Positions 18,607 through 21,688 are shown, numbered from the stretch's first letter. The stretch is 64,000 nucleotides of DNA from Monocercomonoides exilis PA203 (GCA_001643675.2 LSRY02000004.1:62001-126000), one strand, 5' to 3'. Notes: generated by a model not told the origin, from the sequence alone. Numbers and translations are program-made.

Positions 18607-18962
18607 AAAGAATGAATGAAGAATAATTTTTCATTATTATTTCATTTCATATTTTTTATTATCATTTCGCAAAACGAACTTTTGTTTTGAATTTATTCAT
18701 TCTTTTCAAAGAGAAAGAAACAACATTTATCATTCTTATTTATTTGAAAATATTTAAACGAAACCAAAAAAAGTATATTTCTTCAAAATGAGACATCTAG
18801 TGTTTCATCTGAAATTTTCAAAATCATTGATGTTTATAAAAGTTTTTTCGAATGAAGAAAAAGCAACAAAAATTAAACATTTTTCGATTATGTGGTTGAA
18901 GGGCAAATGGGGATCATTCGGCCAGTTTAAAAAATGAATGGAAAAAATGAGTTATGAAGCAT

Positions 18963-20340
18963 TTAACTGCAACCAACTTCTGACATATCATGTTTGAAAC
19001 ATTGTTGAATCAAATAATGATGTGAAAAACGAAAAATAAAAATTTGTGGGATCAAATTTATGATCCTCTTGATATTCTGATGCTGATTCTCCATCTCCTG
19101 CCCCAAACTCATCTTCATCTGTATCTTCTGATGATTCTTCAAAAAAAAGGTTTCTGACTCGTCTTCTGATTTATCTTCCCGATCTTCATCGGTTTTTTCA
19201 GCCACTGGAATAGAATACAATTTTCTTTTGATGAATGAATTTATTCTCATTTTTTATTATTATGAAACATAAACTCAGCAAGGTGACCGTCAATATATTT
19301 GTCTCTCACTCCAGATTTTGGTGAAACATTCTGAAATCTCGATCATAAGCTCTCCACACTGTTTGTGCATACTTTTGTGATAGGATCTACAAAGTGAAAC
19401 TGATAACACACAGTTCAATGAATTTAGTTATACTCCGGCAAACACTTGTGGACTGGCCATTCGTCCAAATAAATTGATATTTTTAGTTTGATATTTGAAA
19501 GGATAAACGGAAATAATGTTCTTTTATTTCTTTTTTCAACTCTACCAATGAAAAATCTGCTCTCTCTTTCTTTATCAACCTTTTCAATTCCTTCGAATGA
19601 CCAAATAAGAGGCTTCCTCCTTCCTTTGTGGTATTTCCCTCTTCTCAACAGGGCTTTATCGATTTTAATAAATCTCCCCTTGCCTCTGACCGCCTGAAAA
19701 TCTTCACATAAGAACTTGGCAGAATGTAATCGGCAATGAGAATACCAAAATGAAACTGATCCTCTATCAAGATTAAGCATTAAACATGTCTATGAGATAA
19801 TAATATTTAGACAGTAATACAGAAGAATAAGCAATTATTTGTTAAGAGGAATTTTGATGTTTAAAAGGAAGTTTTGTGAAAAAAGCTAATGGATTTGCCA
19901 CAATATGAGCATCAAATTGTCTTCTTGTTTCAGATCTTTTATAAACATCCATTTAGGTAATTCTTTTTGAAAAGTCGCATATGTTAAATTTTCAATAAAA
20001 TCGAAAATTTCATATTTAACTCAAATTTTTGTTGACATGTTCCAAACTTATCCTATATGAAATCTATTTTTGGATAATGCTATTTCACTCATTCCAAAGA
20101 AGATTCGTGAGAAGAAACAGAAATTTGAATAAAATATTAAATTTTTGATATTTTAGAAAATAAAACATTTGTGACTTTTCAAAAAGAATCACCAATTTTC
20201 GAACAATAATTTGGACAGTTTTCTTCATTCGTGTGAAGGGTGTTGTTGAAGATCCAGTCGAATGACCCTTCGTTGATGAAAATACAATGTTCAATTCATT
20301 TATCTCTTGTTTTGAACAGGATATGCTCTTCAACATCACT
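18963..20340 (-). mobile_element. Decayed Merlin/ISXO2 (IS1595-family) DDE transposase pseudogene, interrupted by a 240-bp palindromic insertion
   Basis: Minus-strand translation shows CPNYCSKM...CSYCGKSISFF (N-terminal Cys motif), GKGRFIKIDKALLRRGKYHKGRR..IWSFEGIE, RNKRTLFPFI, IYLDEW, IH*TVC..HFVDPITKVCTNSVESL*SRF and HLAEFM, then an acidic tail. Multiple stops and frameshifts. Element ends not defined. Confidence 0.85.
19955..20194. mobile_element. 240-bp fold-back (MITE-like) element, degenerate copy B, flanked by ATTT/ATTT
   Basis: Left end aggtaattctttttgaaaagtcgcatatg... is the imperfect reverse complement of right end ...catttgtgacttttcaaaaagaatcacca. Direct repeat attt at 19951-19954 and 20195-20198. 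Aligns with copy A at 21067. Confidence 0.85.
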
Positions 20341-21066
20341 AAATAAATCGATTTCAGATGAGTTTTAATATTTGTATTTTTTTGTACTTCTTTTTAAATT
20401 AATGAATATTTGCACACAAATAGTTTTTATAATTAATGGGTTCAAGAAAATAAAAGAATATTCAACATTCTTTCTTTTAATATATATAAACACAGAAATA
20501 TGTTTGTATTTGATATCTATTTGACACATAATAATTGAAAAAAGAAAAAAACAAGTTAATTTCTGCTTGTCGTGTAATACTCATTTCCTGCTTGAAGATT
20601 CTAACCTTCATTAATTTTAAGCAAAAAAAGTTTAATTTTTGTTTCACACACAACTTTTCAAAACCATCTCATATTATGAAATCAATTGTATTTTCTTATC
20701 AGCTTGCAGGAATCATTGATAGAATGACAAAATGTTATGTGACTTTACACTTATTTCAAAAAATGAACCAATTTTGTTGAAATTTTCAGATCACAAAAAG
20801 TGAATCTGGAACAAAAAATTTCAATGAAAAAGCTTGAAGTTAAATATTTTGTCCCATATTTTTATTAAACAACAATGATTTTTTTGATTCTTCTTTCTCT
20901 CAAAGATTGTTAATTTTCTTTCCAATTTTTCTCAATATTCATTTCGTTATTTCAAAATCACAAAATCATAATTAGAAAAATAACTTATTTTTTTCTTTTT
21001 TAAATACAGTTTGTGCAAAACATACTGTAACAATTTCTTTAATACTATTGAGAAAAAAATACACTT

Positions 21067-21306
21067 GGCTAATTTTTTTTGAAAAGTTCCTTATGTTTAA
21101 TTTTCCACTAGAATGAAAATTTCATATTTCGATCAATTTTCTGTTCCCACTCACCAAATTTCGCTGTCATGAAAATAATAACATCGCGATGATTTCACTT
21201 TCATGACAGCGAAATTTGGTGAGTGGGAACAGAAAATTGATCGAAATATGAAATTTTCATTCTATTGGAAAATTAAACAAAAGGAACTTTTCAAAAAAAA
21301 TAAGCC
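21067..21306. mobile_element. 240-bp near-perfect palindrome (MITE-like), copy A, flanked by ACTT/ACTT
   Basis: 108-bp arms (21067-21174 and 21199-21306) with 3 mismatches by manual comparison. The 24-bp spacer is centred on the perfect palindrome catcgcgatg (21182-21191). Direct repeat actt at 21063-21066 and 21307-21310. Confidence 0.93.
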
Positions 21307-21616
21307 ACTTGAATTATTGAACGATATTTTGAAACCAAAAATAATTCTGAACTTATATTTTTATTGTGCATTTCAGTCCATTCACAAAATATTCGTTAGA
21401 AGAAAAGCTTTTGATATGCTAAAAATGAAAAATTCGAATTTCACTGCTTCTACGATTTCAATTTAAAATAGAAATAGAAAATGCGACAAATAATTCAAAT
21501 AATCGAAAAAAAAATTCTTTTTTTTATTTTGTTATAATATGAATTATACAAAAAATTTTGTCAAGGAAAAATACATTATGTTTAACTATTGAATTAAAAA
21601 ATCCTTTTTTCATCAA

Positions 21617-21688
21617 GGCCTGATGGTCTAGTGGTATGATTCTTGCTTTGGGTGCAAGAGGTCCCGGGTTCAATTCCCGGTCAGGCCC
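21617..21688 (+). tRNA. tRNA-Pro, anticodon TGG, no intron
   Basis: Acceptor stem GGCCTGA/TCAGGCC, A-box TGGTCTAGTGG, anticodon arm CTTGC-TTTGGGT-GCAAG and T arm CCGGG-TTCAATT-CCCGG. 72 nt long. Confidence 0.97.

Follow-up and report, generated by a model that had tools for sequence, protein, structure and literature searches.

The Sola superfamily of DNA transposons reportedly goes back to Bao et al. 2009. To our knowledge, Sola2 transposition has no experimental model and has never been studied biochemically. Here, we describe two copies (copy A and copy B) of a miniature inverted-repeat transposable element (MITE) of 240 bp, found in a stretch of 64,000 nucleotides from the protist Monocercomonoides exilis PA203. 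This stretch, hereafter the window, corresponds to positions 62001-126000 of contig C36 of the genome assembly. Both copies are probably non-autonomous cut-and-paste DNA transposons of the Sola2 group.

The closest described systems are the Sola2 elements of Dictyostelium fasciculatum and Polysphondylium pallidum, which have 12-22-bp inverted ends and 4-bp AT-rich AWWT target duplications (ATAT, AAAT, ATTT) (PMC3627910). In the published alignments of their ends, these elements start with G, end with C and are flanked by AAAT or ATTT, and Bao and Jurka (2013) stated that a duplication of 4 bp is in keeping with the Sola2 family (PMC3627910). The proteins of Sola2_DFa-2 and Sola2_PPa-1 contain, in this order, the motif blocks NRTD(T/M)CP(Y/M)C, (M/C)DFKEN, W(S/C)D(G/N)A(K/R)HFKS and YHGKS(D/E)(V/C)D (PMC3627910, supplementary).

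Structure of copies A and B

Copy A, which represents the A type, occupies positions 21067-21306 of the window (no strand is assigned to it or to the other MITE features described below). It is a near-perfect palindrome with ends GGCTAATT...AATAAGCC, whose 108-bp arms form a hairpin stem with 3 internal mismatches, and it lies between the two copies of an ACTT target duplication, at 21063-21066 on the left and 21307-21310 on the right. Its predicted DNA folding energy amounts to -115.3 kcal/mol, compared with -22.7 kcal/mol for shuffled sequences (z = -26), and it matches the A-type consensus (240 bp, derived from 20 genomic copies) at 92.5% identity.

Copy B, of the B type, is older. It extends from 19955 to 20194 and is flanked by an ATTT duplication (19951-19954 on the left, 20195-20198 on the right). 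Its inverted ends comprise 78 nt with 83% complementarity (folding z = -7.9), and the terminal GGG/CCC has decayed to AGG/CCA, the ends of the family consensus being GGGTAATTC...GAATTACCC; identity to other B copies is 83-86%. Copies A and B can be aligned over the full 240 bp with zero internal gaps at ~70% identity, and representative genomic copies of both types fit into this same gap-free alignment. The region has a G+C content of 28%. No coding signal was found in either copy, and the open reading frames (ORFs) that overlap them are short and extend into the flanking DNA. An earlier note, made from the sequence of the window, had reported the coordinates, hairpin arms, mismatches and flanks of copy A, as well as the length and flanks of copy B and its end-to-end gap-free alignment with copy A; all of these were reproduced.

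Abundance of the family

The whole M. exilis PA203 assembly (82,301,135 bases in 101 contigs) was searched for further copies. A first look yielded 1064 candidates for copy A and 917 for copy B, of which 40 were scored for each; nearly all of the scored candidates measure 229-241 bp. When up to 1 mismatch is allowed, the B-type terminus of 22 nt, GGGTRATTCTTTTTGAAAAGTC, is found 420 times in forward and 404 times in reverse orientation (824 in total), compared with 0 occurrences for the reversed control. The consensus of 20 A-type copies and that of 29 B-type copies are each exactly 240 bp long, with a mean identity of the copies to their own consensus of 90% (A-type) and 92% (B-type) and a whole-length self-complementarity of 92% and 82%, respectively. 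A-type elements end in GGCTAA or GTC(T/A)AA and B-type elements in GGGT(A/G)ATTC, and in both types TTTTTGAAAAGT comes next. Among the 38 copies with perfect duplications (see below), length varies from 237 to 242 bp and is exactly 240 bp in 24. Hundreds of dispersed copies of fixed length exist, and A and B are two gap-free homologous subfamilies, real copies of a very abundant MITE family.

Two B-type copies (L030 and L031; C80:1364083-1364319 and 1367083-1367319) are located 3 kb apart in opposite orientation. Since their flanks are identical on both sides, they suggest a local inverted segmental duplication, not two insertions.

Target duplication and empty sites

Perfect 4-bp repeats flank 38 of 49 independent copies when the position of each element end is allowed to vary by 3 nt or less; given the local base composition, a 4-bp match would arise by chance with a probability of ~0.008 per copy. 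The duplications comprise ATAT (20), AAAT (6), ATTT (5), ACTT (2), ATGT (2), AATT (1), ATCT (1) and AACT (1). In all 38 cases the first position is A and the fourth is T and, because these two positions never vary, the rule can be written as A-N-N-T. The narrower AWWT pattern accounts for 32 of the 38, and TTAA, the target of piggyBac and Kolobok, for none. As regards the earlier note, its description of both copies as non-autonomous elements with terminal inverted repeats (TIRs) and a 4-bp duplication, i.e., MITEs, holds in view of the TIRs, the lack of a coding signal and the 38 perfect repeats, and the flanks do carry consistent 4-bp duplications. The A-Y-T-T target preference that it proposed, on the other hand, has to be replaced by A-N-N-T with ATAT preferred.

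Copy B is inserted in a decayed Merlin-like element (18901-20582, minus strand) with ends GGCAAATGGGG and a 9-bp duplication, TG(G/C)TTGAAG. It contains an IS1595-type domain remnant, recognized as a weak match to DDE_Tnp_IS1595 below the cut-off (E = 0.025). Five paralogues of this host element (L060-L064) are uninterrupted at the corresponding site, where they read ...AC ATTT TCG... with one ATTT, whereas the filled site of the window consists of ATTT, the 240-bp element and a second ATTT. These empty sites demonstrate the precise insertion of copy B. The reverse nesting is found in L061 (C18:704670-708066), in which an A-type MITE is interrupted by a Merlin-like element whose 8-bp duplication is AAAGGAAC. 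As nesting is seen both ways, the Merlin and MITE kinds are independent, and Merlin is not the mobilizer: its duplications are 8-9 bp long, compared with 4 bp in the MITEs, and copy B itself was inserted into a Merlin-like element bearing its own 9-bp duplication. Merlin was rejected on these grounds, in agreement with the earlier doubt about the neighboring Merlin transposase.

Related elements with the same ends or duplication

Hybrid copies combine an A-type left end with a B-type right end within an intact ATAT duplication (e.g., L026). A third MITE family, with elements of ~230 bp, GGG..CCC ends (GGGGGAAAATA...TATTTTGTCCC) and 583 candidates in the genome, shows no sequence relationship to A and B; its complete copies are flanked by ATTT, ACAT, ATAT, ATCT, AAAT or AAGT, which all follow A-N-N-T. 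One 5'-truncated copy of this family, followed by ATAT, is present in the window at 20640-20855.

Longer elements were screened for by means of the exact 20-nt B-type terminus followed by 216 bases and then by something other than ACCC, i.e., with no partner at 240 bp. There are 30 such sites in the genome, and they include the long elements of two classes, X and Y. The class X element (L075+L076; C51:122297-128547) measures 6,251 bp, ends on either side in an exact B-type terminus and is flanked by an ATGT duplication; the class has at least 5 copies at 89-96% identity, plus ~20 more diverged ones. Its interior has a G+C content of 43-50% and zero Pfam matches, and is made up of frameshifted, pseudogenized pieces derived from an IQCH-like ATP-grasp gene of the host. 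In class Y, a homologous IQCH-like piece is found at an equal distance from the element end. Both classes are non-autonomous elements of the Pack type and do not represent the autonomous partner; the search proposed in the earlier note, for longer elements with the same termini that enclose a transposase ORF, led in the long elements examined to IQCH-like cargo only. The hybrids, the 6,251-bp element and the unrelated third MITE family indicate that one machinery serves several families.

A 56-aa segment of the IQCH-like gene has ~300 matches in the genome, some of them within open frames that reach 1,553 aa.

Sola2-type transposase genes in the genome

A search with the UCH protease domain led to a group of open frames of ~1,100 aa. 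One of them (L082, contig C47) is open over 1,166 codons; residues 431-709 correspond to the UCH domain, and the C-terminal part has no Pfam match. This C-terminal part is present in at least 117 scored copies (438 candidates) in the genome. Most copies are 86-98% identical and have open frames of 1,050-1,300 aa; further lineages show 56-59% identity and one, seen in L061, 37%. A transposase fragment of this genome is 91% identical to the M. exilis protein MONOS_11334. The ubiquitin-specific protease (UCH deubiquitinase) domain is complete and is inserted before the catalytic core (L082, L094, L095; C47:1632460-1639000). In L061, the Merlin-like element nested in the A-type MITE is located ~270 bp downstream of the 3' end of the divergent (37% identity) gene.

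Relatives of the C-terminal part number 654 among 1.84 billion representative proteins. In an alignment of 80 sequences, C, C, H, D, D, H-G-K and D are invariant within the blocks RTDxCxxC, DFKE(N), WxDxGxHFR and HGKSxCD. The motif blocks of the M. exilis transposase are those of Sola2_DFa-2 and Sola2_PPa-1, in the same order. Beyond DUF7869, no family name was obtained from Pfam, the names of clusters or the protein Atlas.

With regard to the ends of the transposase element, the C47 gene is flanked by ~320-bp inverted repeats (C47:1632537-1632861 and 1638143-1638463). The repeat starts with AATATTC and has no sharp outer edge. This diffuse repeat is found, together with the first exon and a promoter region common to several subfamilies, in the 1.5 kb upstream of the C47 gene, and its partner follows the gene at a short distance. 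Most other copies hold 10-11 kb of other, intercalated DNA at this upstream place, and the transposase elements must therefore be large, with ends farther out. The contexts of the genes in L018 and L061 are uninformative on this point, as MITE and Merlin insertions adjoin them. Among metagenome relatives of the transposase, found on 11 short contigs, no complete element with flanks was present; the one clean inverted-repeat pair among them (L090, CAGGAATATTC...) ends at the edge of its contig, where no flanking duplication is readable.

Resemblance to described elements

The MITEs of M. exilis resemble the dictyostelid Sola2 elements (DFa-1/2/3, PPa-1/4/5) in several respects: (i) their 4-bp duplications are mostly ATAT, AAAT and ATTT, so that the three commonest MITE duplications are the three named for dictyostelid Sola2; (ii) their TIRs are short, with a G start and a C end; (iii) non-autonomous relatives keep the ends and have a lost or replaced interior; and (iv) a DDD transposase with the RTDxCxxC, DFKE, DxxxH and HGKxxxD blocks is present in the M. 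exilis genome. But while the dictyostelid elements are 10-15 kb long and carry Fanzor, those of M. exilis are 240-bp hairpin MITEs in families of ~1,000 copies, which are joined to the transposase by inference. Their ends are GGG, GGC or GTC instead of GAG or GA, the middle positions of their target may also be C or G, and the M. exilis transposase, unlike its dictyostelid counterparts, holds an inserted ubiquitin-specific protease domain.

Compared with Tourist, Stowaway and fold-back-like MITEs, the M. exilis elements are likewise small, non-coding, AT-rich, provided with TIRs, high in copy number and uniform in length, and, as in classical MITEs, insertions are found near genes and within other repeats. 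Nevertheless, their duplication is a 4-bp A-N-N-T sequence, not the TA or TWA of Tourist and Stowaway, and the A type differs from classical MITEs in being self-complementary over almost its whole length. Class X, in turn, recalls the Pack-MULEs in that it combines MITE termini and a duplication with pieces of a host gene, here pseudogenized; it differs from them in being Sola2-like rather than Mutator-related, and in its protist host.

Proposed origin and mobilization

The assignment of copies A and B to the Sola2 group is, in our opinion, well founded enough to be considered probable. A Sola2-type DDD transposase, supplied in trans, would bind the ~22-25-bp termini GG(G/C)T(A/G)ATT...TTTTTGAAAAGT on both ends of the element, excise it and insert it at an A-N-N-T site by means of cuts staggered by 4 nt; gap repair would then duplicate the 4 bp. 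We infer this role of the Sola2-type transposases as movers of the MITEs, as well as the details of cleavage. The length of 240 bp probably results from the descent of both subfamilies from one short progenitor with mirror-image halves, which would also account for the near-perfect hairpins of the A type.

Several findings weigh against the Sola2 assignment. The duplication contains C or G in its middle in 6 of the 38 cases, a target looser than AWWT, and the invariant A and T at positions 1 and 4 fit equally well with a 2-bp duplication of elements with T...A ends. No Pfam family matches the transposase directly, DUF7869 being touched by only 11 of the 80 aligned relatives, and the match to the published Sola2 proteins was established motif by motif, by eye, not by a scored alignment. 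Besides, no GGG-type terminus was found in the 1.5 kb upstream of the C47 gene, and no transposase-bearing element with MITE ends (GG(G/C)T(A/G)ATT...TTTTTGAAAAG) occurs among the long elements examined from the 30 sites, which hold host-gene fragments only.

The earlier note had left the mobilizer unidentified. This stands in so far as no transposase joined to MITE ends was found, and no longer stands in so far as Sola2-type DDD genes are abundant (at least 117 copies). It had also named Sola and Ginger as candidate superfamilies; the AWWT duplications and the DDD motif blocks speak for Sola, and the GGG, GGC or GTC ends against Ginger. Since A-N-N-T is the published Sola2 signature, the MITEs make up an as yet uncatalogued family, but the kind of transposon to which it belongs is known and not new. 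Accordingly, the suggestion that they are undescribed is correct at the level of the family, no published description of M. exilis MITEs having been found in the searchable literature, and incorrect at the level of the kind.

Among the alternatives, it is improbable that the MITEs are moved by a PIF/Harbinger-related (PHIS) lineage whose cuts, at a symmetric A..T target, are staggered by 4 nt rather than 3 nt. PIF-type ends often begin with GG, and DDE_Tnp_4 genes are very abundant in the genome (at least 147 matches, many of them intact). One M. exilis Harbinger family makes a 3-bp AAT duplication, of the A-N-T type and not the classical TWA, and ANT-targeting Harbingers have been published (PMC12477816). 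This family (L078 and L079; C13:449.5-452.2 kb and C31:886.5-889.2 kb), which is 2.7 kb long with a 589-aa ORF, is nevertheless the only one with resolved ends, and these are AGACCTATTTTA (AGACC...GGTCT), with a duplication of 3 bp. A second, divergent DDE_Tnp_4 element has the left end TAGATG/GATG, and none of the elements with MITE ends was seen to contain a DDE_Tnp_4 gene, so that PIF/Harbinger was rejected as mobilizer for the families checked. In addition, we know of no PHIS lineage that makes 4-bp duplications. An equally low probability is attributed to some other, perhaps undescribed, superfamily with 4-bp duplications (Academ, Chapaev-like CMC, Ginger), in which case the abundance of Sola2 genes would be coincidental. 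Several superfamilies can make 3-4-bp duplications, and neither the long-element screen nor the surroundings of the C47 gene revealed an element in which a transposase is combined with the MITE termini. The MITE ends, however, are neither CAC.., as in CMC, nor TGT...ACA, the termini that Bao et al. 2010 are said to have described for Ginger; as they are GGG/GGC/GTC...CCC/GCC/GAC, Ginger was rejected. The absence of TTAA among the 38 duplications also argues against such a superfamily, as does the AWWT-dominated spectrum, which equals the published Sola2 spectrum (PMC3627910).

A different possibility, which appears very unlikely, is that the true duplication consists of the 2 bp N-N, with elements ending in T-GGG...CCC-A inserted into A|NN|T, which would point to a Mirage/ISL2EU-like group. 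The A and T found without exception at positions 1 and 4 are what it predicts and, because these outer bases are invariant, the 2-bp and 4-bp readings predict identical filled and empty sites. The 4-bp reading is kept as the conventional one, based on the longest exact flanking repeat, and it is also the way in which the published Sola2 duplications were read, as 4-bp AWWT (PMC3627910). Finally, it is true that short inverted repeats are common at 28% G+C, and copies A and B might be structural palindromes that do not move, or inverted repeats that arose by chance in AT-rich DNA; this explanation, with a practically negligible probability, is refuted by the hundreds of dispersed fixed-length copies, the consistent duplications and the paralogous empty sites.

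Within the Sola2 assignment, a more far-reaching proposal may be put forward, although we regard it as doubtful: a deubiquitinase-fused and still active Sola2 lineage, with hundreds of intact genes, might drive both the MITEs with GG..CC ends and A-N-N-T duplications and the Pack-type elements, and the 240-bp whole-length hairpin might be a functional constraint (e.g., a single-strand fold-back substrate or a preferred synapsis length), not the result of simple descent.

Significance

In the M. exilis assembly, 35% corresponds to unclassified repeats (PMC8767320). The Sola2-type assignment of MITE families of ~1,000 copies and of their cargo-bearing relatives would explain part of this fraction, and the fixed A-N-N-T signature could be used for annotating the remaining repeats. 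The assignment would likewise extend the host range of Sola2-like elements to the Metamonada. The M. exilis genome, in which intact transposase genes number in the hundreds and the substrates are short and uniform, may offer an experimental model for Sola2; if the active deubiquitinase-fused lineage and the hairpin constraint proved to be true, it would be a natural system for Sola2 transposition.

Other transposase genes and neighboring genes

The DDE_Tnp_4 genes include a pair of elements of at least 4.7 kb (L080 and L081; C12:627.8-632.5 kb and C20) that are 97% identical, have the left end TAGATGAATTGCAC and encode a 751-aa ORF in which the DDE_Tnp_4 match is split by an insertion of ~660 bp. 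Other DDE_Tnp_4 genes, many with intact ORFs, form tandem-like arrays with a spacing of ~2.3-2.5 kb (C62:192-235 kb, C22:115-133 kb, C1:535-545 kb and 726-745 kb), an arrangement that is unusual for cut-and-paste elements.

In the window, a tRNA-Pro (TGG) gene is located at 21617-21688 on the plus strand, 310 bp downstream of copy A. The two share an intergenic region filled with transposable elements, which extends from a DEAD-box helicase gene (16.7-18.2 kb) to an S28 serine carboxypeptidase gene (22.4-23.5 kb).

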